From Rebecca billardiae RCC1528 (Eukaryota > Protista > Haptophyta): a DNA stretch of 64,000 nucleotides. A model generated the notes under the pieces. The model saw only the letters and a program-made list of their open reading frames with translations. It searched no databases and was not told the origin of the DNA. Location of the stretch: positions 2,418,001 through 2,482,000 of the forward strand of contig OZ251223.1 of the NCBI GenBank assembly GCA_965240325.2. The letters run 5' to 3'. The position numbers were made by a program, and so were the translations under genes. Shown here piece after piece: positions 2,016 through 64,000 of the stretch (its first letter is position 1; each line of letters begins with the position of its first letter).

Positions 2016-2429
2016 ATGCGCGCGGCGATTGTCCTTGTGCTGGCACTCGCCGCGGTGCCAATAGGCGGGTATTGGGCCCACACGCGATTGCCCCAAGCGA
2101 GGCGCGCGCGCATGTCGTGCCGCTGCTCCGACGCTCTGGACGAGAGCGATCGCATCGAGCTCGTGCGAGCCCGGCTGGAAGAGCGGCACACAAAGGAGCT
2201 GCTCCGGCGGCCGCGGCGCTACCTCTCGTTCGAGCACGCGCGTCAGTGGGCAAGGGCCATGTGGTTCACCTGTAAGGACGATTGGATGCTGATGCTCGAC
2301 CGCGGGGAGAAGCGAAATCCGTACATCCCCCGGAGGCCAGACGAATATTACGCGGACAAGGGGTGGACTGACTGGGACGACTTCCTCAACGGTGAGTGGG
2401 GACCGGACTTCGAGCGCAGCGGGCACTAG
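2016..2429 (+). CDS. Small signal/transit-peptide protein with one 'integrase repeat unit'-like domain
   Basis: MRAAIVLVLALAAVP leader, then YLSFEHARQWARAM...W...IPRRPDEYYADKGWTDWDDFL, the F..AR...W...P..P...Y...GW..W.DFL repeat seen in algal and phage proteins. Confidence 0.65.
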   Translation: MRAAIVLVLALAAVPIGGYWAHTRLPQARRARMSCRCSDALDESDRIELVRARLEERHTKELLRRPRRYLSFEHARQWARAMWFTCKDDWMLMLDRGEKRNPYIPRRPDEYYADKGWTDWDDFLNGEWGPDFERSGH

Positions 2430-3208
2430 GGCGAATTCCGGCTCATCCTATCCCATACGGGCCGCATCGCATCGCGATTCGCGACGCTGGCTCACCGGTC
2501 ACTTGCCTGCCCCGAGGCCCCTGGACTTGTCGTGTCCAGACCACTTCCACCCGTTGCGATGACACAACGACTGCTGATCGGAGCCGTCCTTGGCTCATTT
2601 TTTTGCCGCCTCGGGATCGCCCTGGACTGGCTTCATCAGCATACGGATTCCCCCAAATGCAATGCGGAGGAGACCACCTGGATCTGAATTTACATGACGA
2701 CCAACAGTTCGTGCTGGGCATCACGCTTCAGTACTACTGTCTACTCTCTGAGTAGCCTTCCGGGCCTAAACGCGGCAGCCTCGCCGGCCGTCACACGCAA
2801 TATACTTTAGTGTTGATGAATACGACAGTCAGCGGTATACTCCGGCGCGATGGCCGCGGTATAGTGAAGGCTGACGATCGGTGTTACCAGTCTGATGAGC
2901 GATGTACAGTGATTCTCAGAACGTCAACGTACATACAGTAGCTTAAGCTAGTTATTGTTAATAACGACTCTCTCTCTCTGGCACTCCGTCGTCTCGATCT
3001 GTATATGTATGCATGTAACTATGTAGTATGCTATGCATGCATGTATATGTCGAATTAAATTACAATATATTTATTTAGCTATACGTCGATTATAGAATTA
3101 TGTCATCAGCAGCAGCAGCGAAGTTTCGGCGGCGAGCGTTCCGATGACCTCGCGACGATGGCCTCGCAGACCTTCCGCACCGCACAGCCAGCAGGATCGA
3201 GACGACAC

Positions 3209-5647
3209 TTAGGACCCGTGCTTCCTTGTCGTGGGATCGTTGCTGCCAAAGGGTGTCATCATCGCATCCGACGTGCGGGGCCGCTTGTGTGTGCCGGGAG
3301 TGCGGTGCTGCGCCCGCTGCGCTGAGCCGTTCGCCGACGCTCGTGCAACCTGCTGCGCGGCGTGGGCATGCACGCGCCCGCCATCGCCTCCACTCCTGGG
3401 TCCCGGCGCCGATGACAGGCCCATCGGTCGTGCTGGGGTGCGTGTCTGTGGCGCCCCTGGCGTTCCCGAGCCTCCAGCAGCGACGGCCGCTGGCCGGGGC
3501 AGTGCGTGCCGGGCGCCAGAGCCTGCCAGCATGGGCGTCGCGCCCTGCCCGCGCGGGCCCGGCGGCGGGGTGCCACTTGCGCAGGCGGCGTGTGGGAACG
3601 AGAGCCACGGCTGCTTGCACGCCAGCCCCTGGTGCTGGTCGCCCCCAGGTGTGATCGGCCGGCGTCCACTCGCATCGGCGCGCTGGTGACTGCTGTCGTG
3701 TGGCGTCGAGCGGCTGCCCGGCGGCGGCCGTGCCTCTGCCTCGCCGCTGCTCCACTCACGCCGCAGCTGCGCGAGCCAGGCCCCATCCAAGGCCACGCCG
3801 CGCTCGGCCACTGCGCCCGCCTCGGCAGCGGCAGCGGCAGCGCCGCCGTTCTGTGTCGCGCGTTGAGCGCCGGCGCTGCCCCGCCCCTCACGCGCCTCCG
3901 CCTGCTCCGCCGCGTGCGCGCGCGCGGCCAGGTGCGAGAGCGCTGTCGCCCTGCGCCTGGAGGCGAGGAACTCCCGACGGTGGTCCCAGCCGGACATGTC
4001 GTGTGGCTTCCGCGCGGGGCCCGGCGCCGGCGGGTGGGATGGCTGCGCCGGAGGCGCGTCCTGCGCGCGCGGCGCGGCCCCCGTCTCCGCCGCATCGGCC
4101 GTCGCGCCGTCCTCAGCAGGCAGCAGGTCGACGGCCCAGAGGGCGCCGTTCGAGTCAAGTGCCCACATGGTGCGCCTCGGCGCGCCCGCCGGAGGCGCGC
4201 CTCGCTCGGGCGCGCCGAGGCACAGCCCCGTCAGCGGGCGGTTCACGCACTGCCAGCTGCCAAGCGCGCTCGCTCCGTCGAGCACGCTGCGCGCGAGCGG
4301 GGCCGGCCCAGGCGCGTGCGCCGAGCGCGCCCACACCGGGTGCCACGTCGCGTCTGCGGCGCGCACGTCGACGCGCAGGACCGCCGCGGGCTCCGTGCAG
4401 AAGCGCAGCAGCGGCGCCGCGGCCGGCGCGCTCTGCTCGCCCTCCTCCACGCCGAGCGGCGGCACGAACGATCGCCACGACAGCAGAGGGCGGCGCAGGA
4501 AGCGCGCGTCGAGCACAAGCAGCTGCCGAGCGCTCGCGACCGCGAGCTGTGGCGGGGGCGCGCACGCGTCGGCGGCGGGCCCCGCGTGGTCAGAAGCGGC
4601 GGCGATGGCGAGGATGGGCTCCGAGGCGGGCAGGCCGAGGTCCATGCACGTGGCACCGCCGGCGCCACCCGCGGCGCCGCGTGCCAACGCCAGCGCCGTG
4701 CACGAGCCGAGCGGCGGCGCGCGCGTGTCGATTCGGCGCACCTCCAGTGAGTCTGCATGCCACAGCTGCCGAGGGTGCGTGCCGTACGCGACGGCGTGCC
4801 AGCTGGTCGGCTGCGCGCGGCTGCCGCACGGGCCGCCCGCGCGACGCACCGGCACGCACGCCGTCTCCTCCACGCCCGCGCCCCCGCCGCGCCCTCGGTC
4901 CAGCAGCAGCGTGCGCACGCGGCCGTCGCTCGTCGCCAGGGCGAGCTCACCCGCCGCGTGCGGCGAGAAGGCCGCGTCGGCCGCGTACGCGGGCGTGCGC
5001 ACGCTGCACGCCGGGAGCAGACGCACCGCGCCTGACGCGTCGTCGCCGCCGCCGTCCGCGTCGAGCGCGCGCAGCACGTGCACGCTGTACGTGGTGCGCG
5101 CGCCCACGAGCGTGGCGCCGTGCACGCGCGCGGCGCCGCTCAGCACCTGGTGCACGGCCGACTCCACGATGGCGCCCTCAGACCAGGCGCCCGCGTCTGG
5201 CCGGCCACGGTCGAGGCGGCAGGTGGAGACACACTCCGGCGTGCTCTCGAGGCACGCGACGCCGACGCCTCCCTCCGAGCAGCACGCCAGCTTGGTGCCG
5301 GCCAGCGCGTCGTACTGCCGAAGCTGCGCCTCCTGGGCTGCCTCCTCGCGCAGCAAGGACGAGAGCAGCTGCCGAGGGATGTGCGGATGGCCGCGCGCCT
5401 CGTAGAAGTCGATTTGCTCGTTGACGCGCTCGTCGTCTCTCGTGGGCGCGCTGGCCTGCTCCTCCTGTGCCCTTCGCCGCGCCTCCGCGAGCGCAGCGGC
5501 GCTCGGAGGCTGTCGCGCCGCGAGCGGCCGGAAGCCGAGTCGAGACACGAGGTACGCCGAGCTGACTGGGCGGTGCCGCTCGCCCCACACAGCCCCAAAC
5601 ATCCCGAACGGACCGACGTCCGCCACCCCGTGCTCCCAGGACTGCAT
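3209..5647 (-). CDS. TAF1C: TAF1C/Rrn6-like RNA polymerase I core factor subunit (beta-propeller)
   Basis: 812-aa ORF with DAAFSPHAAGELALATSDGRV, WHAVAYGTHPRQL..AD...V.RIDTR and LLVLDARFLRRPLLSW, matching conserved TAF1C blocks. Start codon uncertain. Confidence 0.6.
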   Translation of the reverse strand: MQSWEHGVADVGPFGMFGAVWGERHRPVSSAYLVSRLGFRPLAARQPPSAAALAEARRRAQEEQASAPTRDDERVNEQIDFYEARGHPHIPRQLLSSLLREEAAQEAQLRQYDALAGTKLACCSEGGVGVACLESTPECVSTCRLDRGRPDAGAWSEGAIVESAVHQVLSGAARVHGATLVGARTTYSVHVLRALDADGGGDDASGAVRLLPACSVRTPAYAADAAFSPHAAGELALATSDGRVRTLLLDRGRGGGAGVEETACVPVRRAGGPCGSRAQPTSWHAVAYGTHPRQLWHADSLEVRRIDTRAPPLGSCTALALARGAAGGAGGATCMDLGLPASEPILAIAAASDHAGPAADACAPPPQLAVASARQLLVLDARFLRRPLLSWRSFVPPLGVEEGEQSAPAAAPLLRFCTEPAAVLRVDVRAADATWHPVWARSAHAPGPAPLARSVLDGASALGSWQCVNRPLTGLCLGAPERGAPPAGAPRRTMWALDSNGALWAVDLLPAEDGATADAAETGAAPRAQDAPPAQPSHPPAPGPARKPHDMSGWDHRREFLASRRRATALSHLAARAHAAEQAEAREGRGSAGAQRATQNGGAAAAAAEAGAVAERGVALDGAWLAQLRREWSSGEAEARPPPGSRSTPHDSSHQRADASGRRPITPGGDQHQGLACKQPWLSFPHAACASGTPPPGPRGQGATPMLAGSGARHALPRPAAVAAGGSGTPGAPQTRTPARPMGLSSAPGPRSGGDGGRVHAHAAQQVARASANGSAQRAQHRTPGTHKRPRTSDAMMTPFGSNDPTTRKHGS

Positions 5648-5709
5648 GGGTGTGCTCTCGACCCAAGGCGCACGTCAGCTCGTCGCTGCCGCCATCGTCA
5701 GCCACGGCG

Positions 5710-6615
5710 ATGGCGGCCCGTGCGACTACGACGATTTGGTATTGGCAGCTCCTGCTGACGCTTCCCTCCAGCTTGGGCGTCCTCGGAGGCGCTAGCCCGA
5801 GCCCGAGTGCACGCCCGGTCGTGCTCATCGACGCGTGCAACTGCGGGCTTCGCTTCGTGGCATCCAAAGCCAAGCGCGTACCGCTGCTCCTCAGCTGCGC
5901 GGGCGATCGCACGCGCGGTGCGCGGGATCTTGGACCATCCCTGAACAAGTGGCTCTTAGCGAACGATGCGTTTGGCGCATGCGTCTTTGACGGCAAGGCC
6001 GATGCCGGGCGATACGCCTCACGCCACTACGAGCTGCACGCCCGGCTGAGCGCGGAGTTCACGGCGGCGGACGTGAGCGCTGATGACGTCATCATTGAGC
6101 GTTGTCATGGCACCGCGCTCACCATCGAGCGCGACCTCACGCTACTCCGCGCCGCGGAGCAGCTCGAGTCATCCCACGGCAAAGTTGCATCTGGCAGCTG
6201 GGTACAGCTGACGCTCCGGCAACATCCGCCGTACGCGCGCGAGAGCGAGCTGACTCGCGCATGGGCACGGCCGAGCAGACACGTGTACACGTGTGCCGCT
6301 GGCTCTGCGCCAGCCACTCGCCTGGCCTCGCAGCTGCGTGCCGTGGAGGAGCGAGGGTCCGCCGATGGCATCTCCGCGCCTCGACTCTCCCGAGGGCCCG
6401 CGCTTGTCGTCACGGCGGACAAGCGACTGCGCTCAGCGTGCGAGCGTGCGGGAGCCATCGTTGTCGCACCTGCTCTCGTACTGGATACGACGTCAGGGGC
6501 GCGGACGGCCACACTTGACGGCACTTGGCAGCGGAGCATGGATGGCACTGCGACAGCGTCGCGTGCGCGCCCCCAGCCGGCTGCTCGCAGCAGCAGAGGT
6601 GCCGACGGGTCGTGA
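5710..6615 (+). CDS. YacP/Rae1-like NYN (PIN-fold) ribonuclease with hydrophobic N-terminal leader
   Basis: Motifs VLIDACN, CVFDG, SADDVIIE and VVTADKRLRSAC..AGA occur in the order of the YacP-like NYN domain. Confidence 0.7.
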   Translation: MAARATTTIWYWQLLLTLPSSLGVLGGASPSPSARPVVLIDACNCGLRFVASKAKRVPLLLSCAGDRTRGARDLGPSLNKWLLANDAFGACVFDGKADAGRYASRHYELHARLSAEFTAADVSADDVIIERCHGTALTIERDLTLLRAAEQLESSHGKVASGSWVQLTLRQHPPYARESELTRAWARPSRHVYTCAAGSAPATRLASQLRAVEERGSADGISAPRLSRGPALVVTADKRLRSACERAGAIVVAPALVLDTTSGARTATLDGTWQRSMDGTATASRARPQPAARSSRGADGS

Positions 6616-52791: not shown

Positions 52792-53427
52792 CTACTGCTC
52801 GCCATCCAGCGGTGCAACGGCAGTGATGAAGACAACAGCATAGTCACGATGCTCGCAGCCGTCGATCTTGGGCATGGGGCCACCAGGAGTGACGGGGAAG
52901 TCGTTGCCATTCGCGCTGCCGGGTGAAGCGCCCGGCCTGACCGGCTTGTACCGCGCCGCGCGGCAGGGTAGATGGGTTATATCAAACAGTGTGCCCTCCG
53001 CAAGCTCCCACTCCCCTGATGGACGCACTGTGAGAACGGTCGTCACTTCTCGGTCACCCGTGACCACGTATCGCCCGGGAGTGATGGGGAAGTCAGGCTT
53101 CTCCATGATCCGGCCATATTCCTCGATCCAGAAGTCAGCGGGGTCGAACTTCCAGCCTGCCCTCGCAACCCCGCCCTTCGCGTCAAGCGACGGCCAGTCT
53201 CGCAGCTGTACACCGCGGGGGCCTGGGTCGACACGCCAAATGCCCCACTCGTGCGCGTTCGTGCCCGATCGTGCCGACGGATCCCCAAGGGCTGCGATAA
53301 ATTGCGTCTGCACTCGCTTGAAGCCGCCCACGTTCCCCATGGCAGTCGAGATCGACAAGGCGAGGCTGAGGGCCACGGCAGCTGGCATCACCAGAGCGCG
53401 CCGCGGGAACTCGGATTGGAGATTCAT
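52792..53427 (-). CDS. Conserved hypothetical protein with signal peptide (start 53427 or 53388)
   Basis: Globular-looking intronless ORF: TQFIAALGDP.A.SG, WGIWRVDPGPRGV, GWKFD..DFWIEE.G.IME.P, THLPCR.ARY. Confidence 0.7.
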   Translation of the reverse strand: MNLQSEFPRRALVMPAAVALSLALSISTAMGNVGGFKRVQTQFIAALGDPSARSGTNAHEWGIWRVDPGPRGVQLRDWPSLDAKGGVARAGWKFDPADFWIEEYGRIMEKPDFPITPGRYVVTGDREVTTVLTVRPSGEWELAEGTLFDITHLPCRAARYKPVRPGASPGSANGNDFPVTPGGPMPKIDGCEHRDYAVVFITAVAPLDGEQ

Positions 53428-53490
53428 CACGACGACGATTCGACGAACTGCATATTATCGAGAGCAGCATGGCGGCTGCATGAGCTGATC

Positions 53491-54321
53491 ATGGCAGCTT
53501 GGTGGGACCTGCACCTTTGGCTTGCGTGCTGCGCGCTCGGAGTGCTCGTGGTACAAGCAGAGCCTCCAGTTGAGCTCTTCACATATGCACATCGGCGGGA
53601 AGATGGCCGCACATTGCTCGTCGACAACGAGGCAGCCGCTCGCCGCGCCGGGATGCCCGCACTCATCAGCATCCATGAACGTGCACTGCATTCACTTGGG
53701 CGCAGCGTGCGCATTGGCGAGGCACACACGCGCGGCTTGCTACACCGCGGGGTGTGGCTCTTCGTTCTCGACGGCCTCGGCCGCATTCTGCTTCTGAAGC
53801 GGACGGCCACTGTGGTCACCTGCCCGTCGGCTTGGGGCCTCGTCGGGGAGCACTGCGCGGTTGCGGAGCCCTGGGAGGCCACCGGACGCAGGGCACTCAC
53901 GGAGGAGCTGGGGTTGAGCGACACGATCGCCGATAGGATTCAAGTGCGACAACTCGGCGCGCCTCTCATCATCCGCACGGACTACGCCGTGGAGGGCGGC
54001 GCAGCGCGTGACCGTGTGCTTGGTAGGAAGGCCGACCTGCAGGTGACAGCTATCCTCGCTGCGACACTGCCGCGTGGGGCCGAGCACGGACTGAGGTTCG
54101 ACACCGACGTCGCAGATACTCGCTGGGTTCAGTCTGAGGACATCTTGCGTCTCGTCCGTCGGCACGATCATCCCGAGTCAAGGTCACACGATCGGGCGAG
54201 TGCGAGGACTGGGAACTCATCGATGGTGGCCTCTTCTGCCCTGGACGGAGCGCTGTGTAATCGTCTCTTAGCGCAGCTGATGGCGGTGGCACTCCAACGA
54301 CTTCGCCGAGAGGAGCGCTGA
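53491..54321 (+). CDS. Nudix-fold protein, type-1 IPP-isomerase-like, with signal peptide
   Basis: AHTRGLLHRGVWLFV, ILLLKR...VTCP.AW, GEH....E.....RRALTEELG. Confidence 0.8.
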   Translation: MAAWWDLHLWLACCALGVLVVQAEPPVELFTYAHRREDGRTLLVDNEAAARRAGMPALISIHERALHSLGRSVRIGEAHTRGLLHRGVWLFVLDGLGRILLLKRTATVVTCPSAWGLVGEHCAVAEPWEATGRRALTEELGLSDTIADRIQVRQLGAPLIIRTDYAVEGGAARDRVLGRKADLQVTAILAATLPRGAEHGLRFDTDVADTRWVQSEDILRLVRRHDHPESRSHDRASARTGNSSMVASSALDGALCNRLLAQLMAVALQRLRREER

Positions 54322-54998: not shown

Positions 54999-55748
54999 TC
55001 ATCCAGCATTGTTCAAGTCCTTCAGCTCCAGGCTGTCGACGACACCGCGGAGTGCATCGCGCTGCGCGTCCCACGACGCGCCAATCGGCGCATGTGCTGA
55101 GAGCACTACCATGTGGTTCGCAAAGTTCACGTCCTGTACATGAAGGGGAGTGGGGCACATGCGCCGCAGAAACCAGGGTGGGTATGGGAAGGGCGCGAAA
55201 GCGGGGTGGGGTGGGAGGGGGGGGCGGTGGCGCACCTTCTTGAGAGCGACGGCGGTAAATCCGCGGTCGGTGTCAGTCTGTGACTCGAAGATGAAGGCGT
55301 CCTGCTCGCCCATGCGCGCACGGCGTTGGGCGAGCACCTGACCGACAACGATGCGGTCGGCGGCTGCCTCGATACTTCCAAAGGCATCTACAGATGTGTA
55401 CTGCGGGCCAGGCGGGAGTGTCTGGGTGGTGAGCTCGACAGCAGCGCCATCCGGGCCGTTGAAAGTCACCGAGCCACCAAACGCCAGCCTCTCCGCGGCT
55501 TGTCCGAAGAGGCCGCCTGCAGTGCTCCGCGAAAACCCAGTGGGAGCTGCGAAGCTGAATCCAATCACGTCGTTTGCGAAGATGGACGGGCCACTCGCAG
55601 CCGCTCGCACAGGGCGTGCGCAGGTGAGAAACGCTGAGCTTGATGCGCACGCCGCTGCTGCCTGCCTCACGAACTCTCTCCGCGGGGCCTGAAGGCTCGG
55701 TGCCAACCCAGAGACTAGCAGCGTGGCCACCGCCGCCGCTGGCGCCAT
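54999..55748 (-). CDS. PsbP-domain thylakoid lumen protein
   Basis: Leader with twin-Arg (RRE) and AxA site; FSFAAP.GF, SVDAFGS, W......LRGVVDS; probable intron 55235-55134. Confidence 0.7.
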   Translation of the reverse strand: MAPAAAVATLLVSGLAPSLQAPRREFVRQAAAACASSSAFLTCARPVRAAASGPSIFANDVIGFSFAAPTGFSRSTAGGLFGQAAERLAFGGSVTFNGPDGAAVELTTQTLPPGPQYTSVDAFGSIEAAADRIVVGQVLAQRRARMGEQDAFIFESQTDTDRGFTAVALKKVRHRPPLPPHPAFAPFPYPPWFLRRMCPTPLHVQDVNFANHMVVLSAHAPIGASWDAQRDALRGVVDSLELKDLNNAG

Positions 55749-55860
55749 CGTGGAGTGCCAACCGGAATACTTGTCATGGTATAATAATACGATCGTACTC
55801 CGGGGACACGTCCGACGTCCCCCGGCCCGTCCTCTGCGATCGCGTGCAAGGCTGCCACGG

Positions 55861-56721
55861 ATGCCGCGTGGAAGAGGCCTTGCGGTGGACGTGTCCAGTC
55901 CGACACGCGCGGTCACGGCGTCCGCGGCGCCATCAGACAGCTCTCTGCCACTGGGCATCGTGGAGGATGGAGATGCGCCCAAGCAAGCTGGTCACGTGCG
56001 CTTCGTTTGCATCAGCGACACGCACGGGATGCATGGCAAAGTGCGCGTGCCCGCTGGCGACGTGCTTGTCCACTGTGGCGACTTCACGTCGACGGGGGAG
56101 CAGGGCCAGGTGGCCTCGCTCGAGGCGTGGCTCTCGAGCCTCCCGCACGAACACAAGGTCGTGATTGCCGGCAACCACGACGTCACGTTCCATCCAGAGC
56201 ACTACCAGGCCAACCACCAGCGCTACCATCGCCATCCGTACGACTGCGAGCAGGTGCGGCGTATCCTGACCGAGAGTGCCAGCGTCACGTACCTCGAGGA
56301 CTCGGCCGTGACGATCCACGGCCTCCGTGTGTACGGGTCTCCATGGCAACCCGAATTCTGCAACTGGGCCTTCAGCCTGAAACGCGGAGCTGAGTGCCAA
56401 GCGGTGTGGGCGGGAATCCCAGACGACACCGACATCCTCCTCACGCACGGCCCGCCGGCCGGGCACGGCGACACTTGCTGGGGTGGCGGTGCTCAGGTGG
56501 GCTGCGAGCACCTCATGCACCGGGTGCGACGTGTACGCCCCCGCTACCACATCTTTGGCCACGTGCACGAAGGCTACGGTGTGACACACGACGGCGCCAC
56601 CACATTCGTCAATGCGAGCACTTGCAACCTTCGGTACCAGCCAAATAACCCGCCAATCGTCTTCGACGTGCCGGTCCCATCGACGTTTGCCGGCGAGCTC
56701 ACAGCTGATGACGCGCCGTAG
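55861..56721 (+). CDS. Metallophosphoesterase, MPPED1/2-like
   Basis: ISDTH, HCGDF, IAGNHD, GSPWQPEF..WAF, THGPP, FGHVHE. Confidence 0.92.
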   Translation: MPRGRGLAVDVSSPTRAVTASAAPSDSSLPLGIVEDGDAPKQAGHVRFVCISDTHGMHGKVRVPAGDVLVHCGDFTSTGEQGQVASLEAWLSSLPHEHKVVIAGNHDVTFHPEHYQANHQRYHRHPYDCEQVRRILTESASVTYLEDSAVTIHGLRVYGSPWQPEFCNWAFSLKRGAECQAVWAGIPDDTDILLTHGPPAGHGDTCWGGGAQVGCEHLMHRVRRVRPRYHIFGHVHEGYGVTHDGATTFVNASTCNLRYQPNNPPIVFDVPVPSTFAGELTADDAP

Positions 56722-57471: not shown

Positions 57472-58473
57472 TTAGACGATGTTGATGACACTCTTGCCCC
57501 GCGCTCCACCGGTGTCGAGCATCTGGAAGGCAGCCTGGCTTTGCTCCAGCTTGAAGCGCTGGTCGATCGTCGGCTTGAGGACGGCTCGGTCGGCCAGCTC
57601 CGCGAGGTGCTCAAGGTCGGCGCGGTTGATGCTGACTACGAACGGCTTCGAGCTCTGCCCCTTGCCCAGCACCCAGCTTGCCTGCAGCATCGACGTCATC
57701 ACAAAGTTGCCTCCGATCGGTACGTACGTGCCGGTGGGTGCGAGGGCGGGTTGCAGCTCCTTGATCGGCCTGTGCGCGGCCGTGTCGATGATGACGTCGT
57801 AGTGCGCCCCCGTTGTCACGAAGTCTGTGACCTTGTAGTCGATCACTGCATCCGCACCGAGCGCCTTCACCATGGGAACAGACTTGGTGGAGCACACGGC
57901 GGTGACGTGCGCGCCATAGTGCTTGGCCAGCTGGACTGCGTAGTGGCCAATGCCCCCGGCCGCGCCGTTGACGAGGACCTTGTGCCCGGAGCGGACAGCG
58001 CCGTGATCACGCACCGCCTGCAGCGCGGTCATGCCCGCGGCGGGGAGCGCTGCAGCCTCCTCGAAAGAGAGCTTCGTCGGCTTTGTGGTCAGCGTGTCCT
58101 CCTTCACGCACACAAACTCAGCGAAAGCACCGAAGCCGACGTCCGAGATGTCGCCAAACACCTCGTCACCAGCCTTGAGCCGACGTACGTCCGGGCCGAC
58201 CTGCTGCACTACCCCCGCGACATCCGCACCGGGGACAGGATACTTTGGCTTGGTGAGGCCAAATCCGAGCCGGATGACCGCGGGCTCACCCTTCATGAGG
58301 TGCCAGTCACCGCGATTGAGCGAGGCAGCGTGCACCTTGACGAGCACCTGGTCCGCCTTTGGGATGGGCTTGAGCACCTTCTCCACCTGCACGACGCTCG
58401 GCGGTCCGTAACGGCGAAAGGTTGCCGCCCTCATCTCGGTGTTCGAGTCGTTCGTGGCAGTCGGCGTCGGCAT
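57472..58473 (-). CDS. Zinc-independent MDR-family NAD(P)-dependent oxidoreductase
   Basis: YGPP.V, VKVHAASLN..DW, G.DVAG.V, GAFAEF, VLVNGAAGGIG..AVQLAK, LGAD.VIDY; intronless. Confidence 0.92.
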   Translation of the reverse strand: MPTPTATNDSNTEMRAATFRRYGPPSVVQVEKVLKPIPKADQVLVKVHAASLNRGDWHLMKGEPAVIRLGFGLTKPKYPVPGADVAGVVQQVGPDVRRLKAGDEVFGDISDVGFGAFAEFVCVKEDTLTTKPTKLSFEEAAALPAAGMTALQAVRDHGAVRSGHKVLVNGAAGGIGHYAVQLAKHYGAHVTAVCSTKSVPMVKALGADAVIDYKVTDFVTTGAHYDVIIDTAAHRPIKELQPALAPTGTYVPIGGNFVMTSMLQASWVLGKGQSSKPFVVSINRADLEHLAELADRAVLKPTIDQRFKLEQSQAAFQMLDTGGARGKSVINIV

Positions 58474-58830
58474 GCGGTCGCGGCGTGGACGTCCCCGGGA
58501 CCAAGCCGCTACTCTACCGTTGGCTTCAGGCGTAGTAAGTAAGCGGATTCCTCCGGAAGTTTCGCCTAATTTTATAGTAGAAACTTTATTTCGGCAACTG
58601 AAAACGATATATATTTTGGGCGCAACTTTCAGTTGCGCCCAATGCACAAAGACACCGCCACAAAACAGACCGGCGCAGGCAGGCGAGGGGCGCGTTGCCG
58701 CACAGTATGTATTCTTCATATCACCACAGACCCTAGCTTGCCAGTGCGGCCGGGCGGCCGGCCCAACCTTCAACCTGAAACGACCGTATCTTTGCACAGC
58801 TCCCGCCGCTCGCCATCGGAGGCGTCGAGA

Positions 58831-60738
58831 TCAGATCGCAAGACACAGCGCCACTTGCCCGGTGTCCAGCATCCTCGCTGGGTCGACGAGGTGCTCGACG
58901 ACCACTGCGGACGGCTCCGCTGCGGAGTAGACTCTGTAGATGTGATACGCGTCGCCCATCTTGCACGCGAGCTCCCACTCGCGGCGCGTGAGGTGGAAGA
59001 CGTTGCTCCGCGCGTGCCGTGTCGACTTGACCTCGACGTACGTGATCTTGCCCCCTCCCTCGATGAGCTCGAGGTCATACCCGAGTCCGGACTCCTCCCG
59101 CTCGTTCACCCAGTTCACGGTGGCACCCGGGCGCGTGAGCAGCAACAGCTGGTAGACGAGCGCCTCGCCCCAGCGCCCGACGGCGCGCAGCTGCTGCTCG
59201 CGCGCCGCACCGCCCGGCGCGGGCGGCGGGGCCAGCGGCAGGCATGCCTGCACGTCGGCGCACGGCACGCGCACTGGGCCTCCGCCGAGTGGGCGGGTCA
59301 CCGACACGCACGCGGACTCCAGGGCGCCGAGCAAGGAGGCGTCGGGGCCAAGCGCCGCGCGTCGGCTGCAAGTGCGCGGGCCCGGCGGCGTGTCGTCGCG
59401 TGGGCGCTTGCACGCACGGTCGTCATCGTCGCAGACTGCTCGGGCCTCGCCGTCGCGCTCCGCGCGCACGCCGTGTGCGCCGGGGCTCCCCGCCGGGGCC
59501 TGCCCACCGCCGGTGGCAGGCTTGCAAGGTCGGCTCTGCAGCGCATACGCCACGGCGACGTCGAGCAGTGCGCTCCCCTCCGCGTCGGACAGCGGCTGGG
59601 CAGGCGGCGGCGCGTCGCCAGCATCCGGAGCAGGATCTGCCGAGGGCATGGCCACTCGCAGTGCGGAGCGCGCCACGGCGCGCGCAGCCGCCGAGGGCCG
59701 CACATGGCCCGCCTCCTCGAGTGCGCGCGCGCAGCACTGGGCATAGTGGGCGATCATCGAGCGCGCGCACGGGCTCGACGCGGGCGCTGCGGCCGGCGTG
59801 TCGACGTCGGCGGTCATCTCGAGCGCCTGCTCTGCTGCGTCCGCGTCCTCCTCCTCGCCGACCTCCTCCTCGTCTTCCCCTCCATCCGCCTCTGCCGACG
59901 CGTCGCGCGAGCTGCGCCGTTGCCGGCCGCGGCGCGAGGGCCGGCGCGGCTGCTGCCGAGCGTGATGCTCGGCGTGGGTGAGGGCCGTGTTGAATGCCGC
60001 TGCGAGCAGCTGCTGCTCGCGACGCCACGCGTGGCTCGCCATGAGCAGCAACGGCCGCACCTCGCCCACAATCACGCCAAGCTCGCGCACGGCCGACACG
60101 CCGTGCCGTGCGCACAGGTGCGAGCAGAAGCCTTCCCGCTCGCGCGCGCCTGCGCGTGTCGAGCGCGCATACTCGCGGAGCTCGGCCAGCACCGCGGCTG
60201 CCGAGAGCGATGCGGCGGGTGGGCGCGTTGAATTGAGCTGCCACTTCAGCCGGACGAGCGGATGAGCGCACAGAGGGCCCAGCCCAAAGGCATCGAACGT
60301 GGGAGGGCCGGTGCACGCGCCGAGGGCATCCTGCTGGTCGTTTTCCAGGTCGATCTCAGCGGGATCACGGCGGTCGTCGCGTGGCGGCTGTCCGCACGCC
60401 CCCTCGTGCAGCGGCGACAGACCGAACGAGGCGAGCACGACGGGCAGCTCGTCCTCGAGGTCGCGCAGAGCCGCGATCGGCCGCGAGTCGACAAACGCCA
60501 GCACAAACCCGTCGACACAGCGCTGCATGTGCGCGAGCTGCACGAGGGCAGGCACGCTGTGCAGGTCGACATGATGCGCAAGCGGCCCTAACACGTGCAT
60601 CACCTCGCTCAGCACGGCCGCATGCGTCACGTAGTTGCCGGAGCCGGCGATGCGCAGCGCCCCGCGCAGCGCGAGCGCATTGGCGTCAGCCATGCTGGTC
60701 CGGGCGAGCAGCCAAGCGCGAACACCGGAGTTCTTCAT
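58831..60738 (-). CDS. Short NO VEIN-like protein: NOV N-terminal domain + DUF3883 (NOV_C) PD-(D/E)XK-type domain (start 60738 or 60693)
   Basis: VPAL.QL.....VDGFV.AF...R.I.ALRDLE, F..FGLGPL..HPLV, ELGV; C-terminal GRWGE.LVY, WVNE..ESGLGYD, YVEVKST, F.LT.REW. Confidence 0.8.
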   Translation of the reverse strand: MKNSGVRAWLLARTSMADANALALRGALRIAGSGNYVTHAAVLSEVMHVLGPLAHHVDLHSVPALVQLAHMQRCVDGFVLAFVDSRPIAALRDLEDELPVVLASFGLSPLHEGACGQPPRDDRRDPAEIDLENDQQDALGACTGPPTFDAFGLGPLCAHPLVRLKWQLNSTRPPAASLSAAAVLAELREYARSTRAGAREREGFCSHLCARHGVSAVRELGVIVGEVRPLLLMASHAWRREQQLLAAAFNTALTHAEHHARQQPRRPSRRGRQRRSSRDASAEADGGEDEEEVGEEEDADAAEQALEMTADVDTPAAAPASSPCARSMIAHYAQCCARALEEAGHVRPSAAARAVARSALRVAMPSADPAPDAGDAPPPAQPLSDAEGSALLDVAVAYALQSRPCKPATGGGQAPAGSPGAHGVRAERDGEARAVCDDDDRACKRPRDDTPPGPRTCSRRAALGPDASLLGALESACVSVTRPLGGGPVRVPCADVQACLPLAPPPAPGGAAREQQLRAVGRWGEALVYQLLLLTRPGATVNWVNEREESGLGYDLELIEGGGKITYVEVKSTRHARSNVFHLTRREWELACKMGDAYHIYRVYSAAEPSAVVVEHLVDPARMLDTGQVALCLAI

Positions 60739-60849
60739 GGAACCGCGCGCGGTCTCGTCTTTCACTGTTCGCTCCGCCCGGGCCGGTGGCGGCGCTTGAC
60801 TTTGTGCCCCGTCTCGTGGAGTCGGTGCATTGGGGGCGAAAGGGGAGCG

Positions 60850-63800
60850 ATGGCGTCGAGGCTGCTTCCGCGCGGTCTGCCGATGAGCGACGACCCGACG
60901 CGGCGGCTCGGGAACGACCCGCTCGCCGATCTGCCCGTGGTCGAGCCGCCGAGCGCGCACACGCTCGGCGAGGTGGTCGCGAACGTTTCGGACAAGTTTG
61001 GCGCGGCGCTCGAGTCCGCGCCCGCGCTGCCTCGGCCGCTCCCGCGTGGGTACCACTACATCTCTGCGGGCGCGCTGCGCGACGAGCTCGAGGACATCGC
61101 GCCGCTCGTGCCCGTGACGCCGGCGCTCAGCACGACCGTGCGTGAGTTCCAGCTGCTCAAGCTGTTCTACTGCAAGGCGCGCGAGTTTGCGCACGCGCAC
61201 ACGCGCTCGATGACGCGCAACTTTTTGTGGGCGAAGCTGATTGGGATCCTCACCTTCCTCCTCGCCGCGATCGTCGCGCTCGTCTCCACCAGCGAGGAAG
61301 ATTCGGACGAGCCGGCCGACGCTGGCGACGGCGAGTCCTCGTCGCTCACTGCGCTCGGCATCTTTGCGGGCGTGGTCGCGACGCTGGTCTCGGCGATGAC
61401 GTCGTGGATGGCGTTCGCAGGGTACGCCACGCGGACCAGCGGCCACCAGGCCGCGGCGGACGCCTTCGACGAGGTCGCGGAGGACGTGCTCTCGATGGCC
61501 GCCGCGATCGACGCGGAGAAGGCGCGCGCGCTGCACGGCGCGTGCAGCCACCTGCACACCGACTGGCTCACCGTGATCTCGCGCGACCTGCCCGAGCTCG
61601 TGCGCAAGGCGCTCAAGTCGATCATGTCGTGCGCGTGCTGCCTCTCGGCCGAGAAGGCGCTCGAGCGCCAGCGCGAGCAGAAGCAAGCGCGCACCTCTGC
61701 GCTCGCGGAGCGCGCGCGCCGCCGCGCCAGCCTGACGGGCTCGATGATCTCGGGCGCGGACGGGCCCAACCTGACGTTGCAGACGCTGCACCGCCGCGCG
61801 GTCGAGCTGCAGATCGCGCACGCGACGCGCGGGTACCTGAACCGCTCGCGCGACGACACGCTCGCCTTCTGGATGCTCGTCCTCTCCACCATCACCGGCC
61901 TCCTCCTCTTCCAGGGAGGCTCGGGCTTTGGCCGCTGGCTGGCAAACCTGCTCGCGACGATCGCCACCGGGCTGGCCGCGTTCGCGCGCTTCATGGCGTT
62001 CGACAGCAAGGCGACGGCGCACCGGCGCACGTCGCGCCGGTACGCCGCGATCGCGCGCGACTCGCGCGTCGTGCTGGTCACCGGCACCAGGCGGCAGCAG
62101 CGCGTCGCGGCGCAGGGGCTCGGCAGCAAGATGGCGGACGCCGAGGACGAGGCGCCGCGGCTGCCGCCCGCGCCCGTGCTGTGGCTGCTGCGCGACGAGA
62201 AGGGGCGGCTGCTGCTGCCGATCCTGACGGGCGGCAGCGGCGTGGTGGGCGAGGACGACGGCGCGCCCGGCGCGTGCTTCGGCCTCGCCCCGCCCCTCCC
62301 CACCTTCCGCGGGGACGAGCACGGCAGCCAGCCCTCCGCCTCCTCCCTCTCCTCCCTCGCCTCCCTCGCCTCCGTGCTGCTCGGCCGGCTCCGCCGCGGC
62401 GACAAGGGCGACAAGGGCGACAAGGGCAAGGATGCGGAGCAGGGCAAGGGGCAGAACGGCGTGGAGGAGCACGGCCCCAAGGAGGAGGAGGCGCACAAGA
62501 ACGAGGAGGAGAAGCACAAAAAGCACAAGAAGCACGACCACGCCGACCACGCCGACCACGAGCTCGGCGAGGGCGAGGACGGCGAGGTGGCGGCCGCCCA
62601 GCAGAGCGGCGAGTCGCGCGGCGGCGGCGCGCTCAGGAGGCTGCGCCAGAGGCGCGCCGAGGATCGCGAGCGGAAGGCGGAGGAGCGCGAGCCGACGCGG
62701 CCCTCCGAGTTCGACGACGAGGCGCTCGCGCGGCTGCGCAAGCTCCACCTGCGCGCGCAGCTCGCCGCGCTCGGCGTGCGGTACGCTGCCGCGTACGAGG
62801 CGATGCCGCCTGTGCCGCGCCGCGTGCGCGCCAAGCACGCACACATCAAGCTGCGGGCGCTCGCGCGCGACGCGAAGCGCGTGGCGCCGCTCGGCGAGGC
62901 GGTGGTGTATACGAGCTCGCGCTCGAAGCGGCGGGTGGAGCTGCTCGTCGGCTGGTGGAAGCGCGCGACCGACCTCGCCGAGGCGCACGCCGAGCTCGCC
63001 GAGGAGAACCGCGTGCGTCTCTCGCGCGTGCAGATGCTCGGCCTCGCGATCGCGACGTGTGTCGCCACGCTGCTCATCCTGGACAACCACTCGGCGGAGA
63101 TCGCCGCCGGCGTGGGCGGCGTGGGCGACGCGGCGAACAGCACGGCGGCCGGGCTCGCCGACGGCGCGGCCGTCGGCCGCGAGGGAGCCGCGCGCGAGGG
63201 CCGGCGCCTCCTCGCCGAGGCCGCCACCGTGTGCGCGGCGCGTGCGCTCGTGCCCCTCGCGGCGCGGGCGGTGGCGGGCGTGGCGGGCGCCGCGGCGGGC
63301 GCGCTGAGCGGGCAGGGCGCGGAGGGCGCGGAGGGCTGGCGCCGCCGTCTCGCCGAGCTCGCCGACGAGCCCTCGGCACCCTCCGCGCGCGCGTCCAACG
63401 AGACGCTGCCCCCCGCCGACGCCGACGCCCCCGAGCCGCACAAGCACCACCACCAGCGCGCGGACGTGGTCCACAGCGGGCTGGTCGTCGGGCTGACCGG
63501 CTTTGGCACCGCCATCGTCGCCGCGCTCGTCACCTTCGGCAAGCTCGCGGGGTACGAGGCGAAGGCGAACGAGCACTTGGTCGCCTCGCGCGACTTTGCG
63601 TCCGTCAGCGCGGAGATCGAGGAGCTGCTCGTCGCGCTGCACGCCGAGGCGACCAACCTCGACCCCGACGCCGACCCGACCGACGTGGACGAGTCGGGCT
63701 CGGACGCGGAGGCGCTTTTCCGAGCGCTTGATTATGTCGACGGCACGCCCGACCCCGATGAGGAGCGCGACCTGAGCTCGGCAGGGCCGGCGGCGCGCGT

Positions 63801-64000
63801 GTCGAAGCGGGGCGGCGTCGCCGGGCTCGCGGAGGACCTCAGCCTCGCGCTCAGCCAGGACTCGCAGGCGTTTGTCGTGGCGGTGGACGTGCAGCCCCTC
63901 CCGCCGCAGATGGCGCTCGACCGACAGATCAAGATGCAGGCGCGCGCGCACCGCGCGCGCGCGTACGCGCCGCACCGGCCTGACGCCCACAAGCGCGCCG
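60850..64000 (+). CDS. Membrane protein with three tandem SLATT-like (2TM effector) domains; runs off the window edge
   Basis: Manual translation from ATG 60850 is open to the window end (>1000 aa). Three units of 'A....AH' + TM-TM + 'Y/F...A..H..A/S..F/Y' at about 61150-61500, 61780-62070 and 62950-63630. Absent from the ORF track. Confidence 0.7.
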   Translation, partial: MASRLLPRGLPMSDDPTRRLGNDPLADLPVVEPPSAHTLGEVVANVSDKFGAALESAPALPRPLPRGYHYISAGALRDELEDIAPLVPVTPALSTTVREFQLLKLFYCKAREFAHAHTRSMTRNFLWAKLIGILTFLLAAIVALVSTSEEDSDEPADAGDGESSSLTALGIFAGVVATLVSAMTSWMAFAGYATRTSGHQAAADAFDEVAEDVLSMAAAIDAEKARALHGACSHLHTDWLTVISRDLPELVRKALKSIMSCACCLSAEKALERQREQKQARTSALAERARRRASLTGSMISGADGPNLTLQTLHRRAVELQIAHATRGYLNRSRDDTLAFWMLVLSTITGLLLFQGGSGFGRWLANLLATIATGLAAFARFMAFDSKATAHRRTSRRYAAIARDSRVVLVTGTRRQQRVAAQGLGSKMADAEDEAPRLPPAPVLWLLRDEKGRLLLPILTGGSGVVGEDDGAPGACFGLAPPLPTFRGDEHGSQPSASSLSSLASLASVLLGRLRRGDKGDKGDKGKDAEQGKGQNGVEEHGPKEEEAHKNEEEKHKKHKKHDHADHADHELGEGEDGEVAAAQQSGESRGGGALRRLRQRRAEDRERKAEEREPTRPSEFDDEALARLRKLHLRAQLAALGVRYAAAYEAMPPVPRRVRAKHAHIKLRALARDAKRVAPLGEAVVYTSSRSKRRVELLVGWWKRATDLAEAHAELAEENRVRLSRVQMLGLAIATCVATLLILDNHSAEIAAGVGGVGDAANSTAAGLADGAAVGREGAAREGRRLLAEAATVCAARALVPLAARAVAGVAGAAAGALSGQGAEGAEGWRRRLAELADEPSAPSARASNETLPPADADAPEPHKHHHQRADVVHSGLVVGLTGFGTAIVAALVTFGKLAGYEAKANEHLVASRDFASVSAEIEELLVALHAEATNLDPDADPTDVDESGSDAEALFRALDYVDGTPDPDEERDLSSAGPAARVSKRGGVAGLAEDLSLALSQDSQAFVVAVDVQPLPPQMALDRQIKMQARAHRARAYAPHRPDAHKRA

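Follow-up and report, generated by a model that had tools for sequence, protein, structure and literature searches.

The right-hand end of a 64,000-nucleotide stretch of the haptophyte Rebecca billardiae RCC1528 (contig OZ251223.1, positions 2,418,001 to 2,482,000; hereafter the window, in whose own numbering positions are given) contains a predicted gene for a long membrane protein made of chained SLATT hairpins. The part that falls in the window, 60850-63999 on the plus strand, encodes three hairpin units that are assigned to two types and follow one another in the order A-B-A, and a fourth unit, of type B, probably follows just beyond the last base. The SLATT protein is best explained as a gated permeability device formed by its own hairpins, an explanation to which, taken as a whole, we give about even chances. 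SLATT proteins are predicted pore-forming effectors of bacterial systems, and their activation in DRT10 has been called an open question. The alternation of A and B units in a chained SLATT protein appears to be new: in a limited set of literature, no paper was found that describes SLATT units, whether chained or alternating, in any cellular eukaryote. The features of the predicted gene are as follows, with transmembrane helices abbreviated TM1 and TM2, hidden Markov models HMM, the GC content of first, second and third codon positions GC1, GC2 and GC3, and the predicted local distance difference test of the structural models pLDDT; P0001 is the closest relative found.

60850-63999, plus strand: coding sequence of the multi-SLATT protein, one unbroken frame open at the window end (GC3 onset; collinear with P0001)
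60946-61125, plus strand: N-terminal extension of type-A unit 1, residues 33-92 (motif P-x-L-P-R-P-L-P-x-x-Y; pLDDT 80-90)
61132-61494, plus strand: SLATT unit 1, type A, residues 95-215 (SLATT_4, type-A HMM, hydropathy, charge bias)
61231-61293, plus strand: TM1 of unit 1, residues 128-148 (hydropathy)
61345-61407, plus strand: TM2 of unit 1, residues 166-186 (hydropathy)
61762-62079, plus strand: SLATT unit 2, type B, residues 305-410 (SLATT_4, Pfam, PADLOC, type-B HMM)
61861-61917, plus strand: TM1 of unit 2, residues 338-356, followed by a 5-residue loop
61933-61995, plus strand: TM2 of unit 2, residues 362-382
62146-62235, plus strand: C-terminal extension of type-B unit 2, residues 433-462, with P-x-L-P-P (type-B consensus; aligned with P0001)
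62236-62664, plus strand: charged, disordered linker rich in His, Lys, Glu and Asp, residues 463-605 (pLDDT, tandem repeats, GC3 0.97-1.00)
62665-62940, plus strand: N-terminal extension of type-A unit 3, residues 606-697 (second copy of the unit-1 extension)
62941-63624, plus strand: SLATT unit 3, type A, residues 698-925 (unit HMM on two halves, SLATT_4, type-A HMM)
63028-63084, plus strand: TM1 of unit 3, residues 727-745
63085-63480, plus strand: Ala/Gly-rich loop of unit 3, 132 residues, residues 746-877 (pLDDT mostly below 50)
63481-63543, plus strand: TM2 of unit 3, residues 878-898
63625-63999, plus strand: inter-unit tail, residues 926-1050, cut by the window end (aligns to P0001 766-884)

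Hydropathy places three pairs of transmembrane helices in the protein, at the residues listed, and each pair belongs to a unit of the same layout: a helix ending in A-H precedes TM1, a loop leads on to TM2, and the helix after TM2 carries a conserved His. The repeats first noticed correspond to residues 100-215, 305-410 and 698-925. The three units are similar to one another beyond shuffled controls (local alignment z 3.0-7.7). The whole protein matches the NCBIfam SLATT_4 model (NF033632, cut-off 55 bits) with 98.9 bits (E 2.4e-28, summed over 3 stretches), and the units taken singly reach 43, 49.7 and 19.8 bits, each below the cut-off (E 4.1e-11, 3.5e-13 and 5.8e-4). The match of unit 3 covers its second half only, and its score is lower because the 132-residue loop splits the match; a local HMM of the unit recovers both halves (34 and 29 bits). 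The Pfam model of SLATT_4 (PF18186, cut-off 27) is just passed, at 27.6 bits and by unit 2 only, and unit 2 is also matched by the '2TM effector' models of PADLOC. These matches support the assignment of the units as SLATT homologues, and they bear out the original prediction, made on the letters alone, of three concatenated SLATT-like domains of two transmembrane helices each that would align both with one another and with SLATT profiles. No further SLATT units were found elsewhere within the window. In units 1 and 2 the flanks of the helices are rich in Lys and Arg and the loops are free of them, that of unit 1 being acidic, a distribution that fits hairpins with both ends in the cytoplasm.

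Relatives of the protein are few, and none of those looked up has an informative name. An exhaustive phmmer search over 1.84 billion cluster representatives returned only 34 proteins at E <= 0.001. Cluster records were examined for 20 of them; all come from metagenome or Logan (raw-read) assemblies, and the only names, on 3 of these records, read 'hypothetical protein'. The best match, P0001, is 36% identical. The plus-strand protein of more than 1,000 residues that had been proposed for this stretch has 1050 codons within the window, and the finding of no protein more than 36% identical in the public collection fits its being unannotated. P0001 is collinear with residues 27-1044 through all three units (29-40% identity across segments) and is encoded on an 18-kb, eukaryote-like contig, at a locus (L001) that it shares with tubulin-cofactor, glycosyltransferase and acyltransferase genes. 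The extension preceding unit 1 aligns to P0001 and also to the stretch preceding unit 3, and the latter, 40% identical to P0001 529-672, cross-aligns with it in turn. The local unit HMM finds one to three units per called relative, and 41 of the 46 units extracted from the family match SLATT_4; in the long relatives no other Pfam domain, and no added enzymatic or sensor domain, was found. Two word-indexed protein searches carry no evidential weight, the index having probably been swamped by low-complexity words: the whole protein gave no match there, and an alignment of two units gave P0029 only.

A maximum-likelihood tree of 49 units from the family falls into two groups with 100/99 support. 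Type A gathers units 1 and 3 of the R. billardiae protein, units 1 and 3 of L001 and of a second relative's locus, L002, together with the leading unit of each protein that was called as having two full units; type B gathers unit 2 of the R. billardiae protein, unit 2 of L001, units 2 and 4 of L002, the second units of two-unit proteins and nearly all single-unit matches. HMMs of the two types, built without the R. billardiae protein and without L001, score unit 1 at 144.5 bits as type A and 45.6 as type B, unit 2 at 41.5 and 126.7 bits, and the two halves of unit 3 at 80.1 + 44.1 and 16.2 + 25.8 bits, respectively. The consensus of type A has an N-terminal extension with P-x-L-P-R-P-L-P-x-x-Y, and that of type B a C-terminal extension with P-x-L-P-P. 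As assigned by tree and HMMs, the chain alternates two unit types in the order A-B-A, and the A/B split is robust. The earlier picture of three alike repeats thus stands as regards SLATT units joined in one chain and falls as regards their being equal copies. Single type-B units occur outside chained genes too, as seen in a 198-residue SLATT protein encoded at L003 1609-2205, on a contig of low GC (0.39) that also carries a DUF1823 gene.

The relatives' loci point to a longer chain. At L001, just past the stop of P0001, lies a fourth unit of type B (47.0 bits with the type-B HMM vs 19.7 with that of type A), which begins ~147 codons after the end of unit 3 and is reached through two frame changes that can be tracked by GC3. 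At L002, P0006 and P0005 together make four units in the order A-B-A-B, with a short GT..AG intron between them, and at L006, P0004 and P0010 are the two A-B halves of one gene. The contig common to P0009 and P0019 probably holds another A-B-A-B gene, and L007 holds a stand-alone A-B gene. By these unit assignments, the A-B-A-B order is shown to be kept in other protist contigs. Prokaryote-style gene calls split the four-unit genes at short introns or frame changes (L001 9700-10366, L002 ~2106-2160, L006 ~1515-1580), so that the family's database proteins look one- to three-unit though the genes have four. Because the P0001 locus is collinear with the R. billardiae protein to its last residues and then continues into a type-B unit, a fourth unit is expected beyond base 64000, and by the spacing seen at L001 a type-B unit would probably begin ~20 codons past the window. 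The suggestion that more repeats might lie beyond the window is in this way backed by the four-unit relatives at L001, L002 and L006. A scan of metagenomes to extend the gene past base 64000 gave 64 pattern hits, none of them confirmed. With a fourth, type-B unit the chain would amount to a pseudo-heterotetramer or to two A-B pairs joined as a dimer. At L007, the A-B SLATT gene adjoins a gene with Ion_trans_2 (two-pore K+ channel type) and WW domains (2136-4244 and 4701-6338) and also lies near an EF-hand gene.

The region has a GC content of 0.69-0.80, with long open reading frames (ORFs) in several frames, and a chance open frame or a pseudogene, with no functional gene, has to be considered, given that GC-rich DNA is full of long ORFs, whatever the frame. 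On the plus strand the SLATT frame stays open from 60592 up to 63999 and continues off the window end; its first ATG, at 60850, opens the 1050 codons. In every 90-nucleotide window across 60850-63999, GC3 is 0.87-1.00, GC2 ~0.5 and GC1 ~0.75, whereas in the three 90-nucleotide windows just upstream GC3 falls to 0.63-0.77, so that its onset coincides with the ATG. This strong asymmetry occurs in the SLATT frame only, which argues that the plus frame from 60850 is the true coding frame of a predicted gene. Together with a family profile that is significant on three separate stretches, and with homology collinear with a relative of 36% identity, it makes a chance frame or pseudogene exceedingly improbable, a reading already close to refuted. 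As read from its sequence, the stretch would be about the first three quarters of a nuclear gene with a single exon, in a haptophyte-type alga of very high GC content, which forms part of the explanation given even chances above.

An antisense ORF of 1719 residues (58831-63990, minus strand) is a shadow over the SLATT stretch, because the GC-rich position falls first in its codons there; the ORFs supplied with the original prediction had been taken for antisense and off-frame shadows, and for this one codon-position GC agrees. Below ~60700 the same minus frame becomes, by codon-position GC, the real frame of a neighbouring gene. The 1719-residue ORF is thus a composite, its 3' third being a real NOV_C gene and the remainder an in-frame shadow of the plus-strand SLATT gene, and gene calling that relies on ORFs would fuse the two genes or get both wrong.

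Across the family the linkers vary freely, and conservation lies in the juxtamembrane His, Glu and Arg and in the Ser and Thr of the transmembrane helices. The charged linker (residues 463-605) has no aligned counterpart in P0001, and the loop of unit 3, with its 132 residues, compares with 35 in the closest relative. Both contain 9-nucleotide tandem repeats, at 62342-62373, 62398-62427 and 62512-62560 in the linker and at 63259-63345 in the loop; these three-codon repeats encode part of the Ala/Gly-rich loop and, in the linker, the runs of Gly-Asp-Lys, Lys-His-Lys and Asp-His-Ala. They suggest a recent low-complexity expansion, by in-frame microsatellite growth of disordered segments. An intron in either segment was considered and rejected, since GC3 there stays at 0.97-1.00 and loop and linker are read as coding; the long loop of the third repeat and the His/Lys/Glu-rich linker that had been noticed at the outset are both present in the protein.

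An AlphaFold2 model of residues 30-470 (one A and one B unit), made with 21 aligned sequences, has a mean pLDDT of 78 and a predicted template-modelling score (pTM) of 0.63. In each modelled unit TM1 is part of one long helix, and TM2, reached through a loop, extends into a cytoplasmic helix. In the model of all 1050 residues the SLATT cores have a pLDDT of 80-95 and the pTM is 0.46, and the linker (residues 463-592) and the loop of unit 3 (residues ~755-870) lie mostly below a pLDDT of 50. A sequence search of solved structures found no relative. Fold matches in the Protein Data Bank (Foldseek, VIA-align) and in the ESM Atlas were set aside as uninformative, being generic helical hairpins or bundles (best Z 8.8, template-modelling score <=0.35). 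Against models of viral proteins, the leading matches are SLATT proteins with one unit, from giant viruses of algae and protists and from a Tetraselmis polinton-like virus (PLV), with probability 1.00, a template-modelling score by target of 0.4-0.67 and a best E of 4e-4, and protein language-model neighbours agree in pointing to viral single-unit SLATT proteins. The best matches are from Pyramimonas orientalis virus, Aureococcus anophagefferens virus, Heterosigma akashiwo virus and Tetraselmis viridis virus S1. A scan of viral contigs with P0013 gave no match.

The viral SLATT_4 proteins (PF18186/NF033632) share with the R. billardiae units the A-H pre-helix, TM1, short loop, TM2 and post-helix with its conserved His, and SLATT_4 is the best profile match of all three units. 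SLATT genes have been reported in giant viruses and PLVs, and are common in the latter (PMC12220804). The gene could on these grounds be an endogenised giant-virus or PLV gene, a relic without a cellular role, all the more as both fold and language-model comparisons place its product nearest to single-unit SLATT proteins of Nucleocytoviricota and the Tetraselmis PLV. We regard such an origin as very unlikely: the extreme GC3 and the neighbouring genes are host-like, no viral hallmark gene lies nearby, and chains of four units were encountered only on contigs that look eukaryotic and contain introns. The matched viral proteins are moreover single units of 170-290 residues, whereas the R. billardiae protein is a fused A-B-A(-B) chain in a cellular genome, with P-x-L-P extensions and long linkers in addition.

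Bacterial SLATT effectors, those of CBASS, Thoeris type VII (ThsH) and DRT3/DRT10, belong to the same domain superfamily, and '2TM effector' models of PADLOC match unit 2. Their proposed action is an assembly of hairpins in the membrane, with ligand pockets between the cytoplasmic parts; ThsH responds to cyclic ADP-ribose (cADPR), and in the model proposed for it forms a filament in the membrane, with charged pockets where protomers meet (10.64898/2025.12.03.692087). The bacterial proteins are single units encoded beside a signal generator (SMODS cyclase, TIR or reverse transcriptase), in contrast to the R. billardiae gene, which has none adjacent, and the assembly that a signal induces in bacteria would here be built into the chain. 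In design, though with no relation of sequence or fold, the chain recalls the four-domain Nav/Cav and the K2P channels, in which internal repeats replace an oligomer of like subunits and are thereby allowed to diverge, as A and B would have done. It differs from these channels in having no selectivity filter or voltage sensor, and conduction is only conjectural in its case.

As a gated permeability device, the protein would consist of SLATT hairpins only, joined by disordered linkers, in the order A, B, A and then the expected B. Each hairpin would keep its two ends in the cytoplasm and expose its loop on the outer side. The four hairpins of one chain would come together as a membrane bundle of eight helices, on which the pre-TM1 and post-TM2 helices, with their conserved His, Glu and Arg, would form a cytoplasmic collar. 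Such a bundle would replace the homo-oligomer thought to form from single-unit bacterial and viral SLATT proteins and would alter the permeability of the membrane. The collar would serve as the gate, possibly with a small ligand bound between units, by analogy with what has been proposed for cADPR-activated ThsH. A pseudo-oligomeric pore, as first suggested for this protein, would be a plausible mechanism. A bolder version, which we think unlikely, would make the A-B-A-B proteins a class of death or ion channels particular to eukaryotes, each a single chain gated by a ligand, whose collar pockets bind a nucleotide-derived signal, for instance one of cADPR type, that is, a protist counterpart of the TIR-SLATT pair of type VII Thoeris with the effector oligomer pre-assembled in one polypeptide.

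Several points weigh against a gated device. Pore formation by SLATT proteins is itself still a prediction in bacteria. The only polar residues of the transmembrane helices are of the Ser/Thr type, with none charged, and a wide aqueous pore is not evident. The packing of the hairpins into a single bundle is a conjecture, and the whole-chain pTM is only 0.46; the fourth unit, expected from the relatives, would lie beyond the window end. Finally, no SMODS, SLOG, TIR or reverse transcriptase gene was found within the upstream 10 kb or at the relatives' loci examined. A signal-generating neighbour is, on the other hand, a contextual and not a structural trait of SLATT proteins, and viral SLATT genes also do without it.

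The same uncharged helices would suit a non-conducting scaffold, anchor or sensor of SLATT fold, whose hairpins and disordered cytoplasmic linkers tether proteins at the membrane. About one third of the chain is disordered linker, the relatives' SLATT loci are ordinary neighbourhoods of housekeeping genes, and outside the viral SLATT matches the fold searches yield generic helical bundles only, all of which would agree with such a role. A tether would, in contrast, hardly lead one to expect conservation in the juxtamembrane His, Glu and Arg and in the Ser and Thr of the helices while the linkers vary, and related bacterial SLATT proteins are required for cell-killing defence. A scaffold is accordingly judged possible but doubtful, and a gated device is retained as the best explanation.

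The SLATT gene has a head-to-head neighbour, and three further enzyme genes are recognised upstream of it:

60739-60849, no strand: 111-bp spacer between the divergent ATGs (sequence, frames)
58834-60738, minus strand: NOV_C/DUF3883 gene for a 635-residue protein, the head-to-head neighbour (Pfam NOV_C E 7.6e-20; minus-frame codon-position GC)
57475-58797, minus strand: zinc dehydrogenase ORF
55723-56721, plus strand: calcineurin-like phosphoesterase (Metallophos) ORF
53251-54321, plus strand: NUDIX ORF

The NOV_C/DUF3883 domain, which is PD-(D/E)xK nuclease-like, is C-terminal in its protein, retains a D...E-V-K pattern of the PD-(D/E)xK type and resembles the C-termini of PADLOC defence proteins of the TmtA type (E 1e-20); the N-terminal 560 residues have no family match. 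The spacer is presumed to contain a shared promoter and 5' leader region. With ATGs only 111 bp apart, head to head, a partner that resembles defence proteins, and SLATT being a defence effector in bacteria, the two genes could form a defence module under a bidirectional promoter, one product acting as sensor or nuclease and the other as membrane effector. The pairing is real here, but its conservation was not found at the other loci examined. The nearest named relative of the NOV_C protein, KFE25_006443 of Diacronema lutheri (49% identity over the C-terminal third), is encoded at a locus (L004) that has a TauD gene adjacent and no SLATT unit within 10 kb on each side, and L005, a near-identical environmental copy of L004, has none within 0.5-4.4 kb on each side. 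The affinity to Diacronema is a hint of a Pavlovales-type haptophyte genome. Conversely, no NOV_C neighbour was found at the SLATT loci L001, L002, L006 and L007. As operon-like logic is also weak in eukaryotes, a two-gene module is considered improbable. The processing of nucleotide-derived signals is a frequent task of NUDIX and Metallophos enzymes; their proximity to the SLATT gene may be chance in a eukaryote.

Among the membrane effectors predicted for bacterial anti-phage systems, SLATT is one of the most frequent. A natural single-chain version, in which the number (four) and the order (A-B-A-B) of the units are fixed, would give a hint of the stoichiometry and asymmetry that a working assembly has, and would be an easier target for structural and electrophysiological work than a homo-oligomer that has to be induced by a signal. 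The gene also adds to the bacterial-type immune modules known from the cellular genomes of marine algae, in whose giant viruses and virophage-like elements SLATT occurs as single units; in Gephyrocapsa huxleyi, a SLATT-domain gene has been described in a preprint as regulated during infection. If the predicted protein is truly a gated pore, it would be a candidate player in algal cell death or in the conflict between virus and host.

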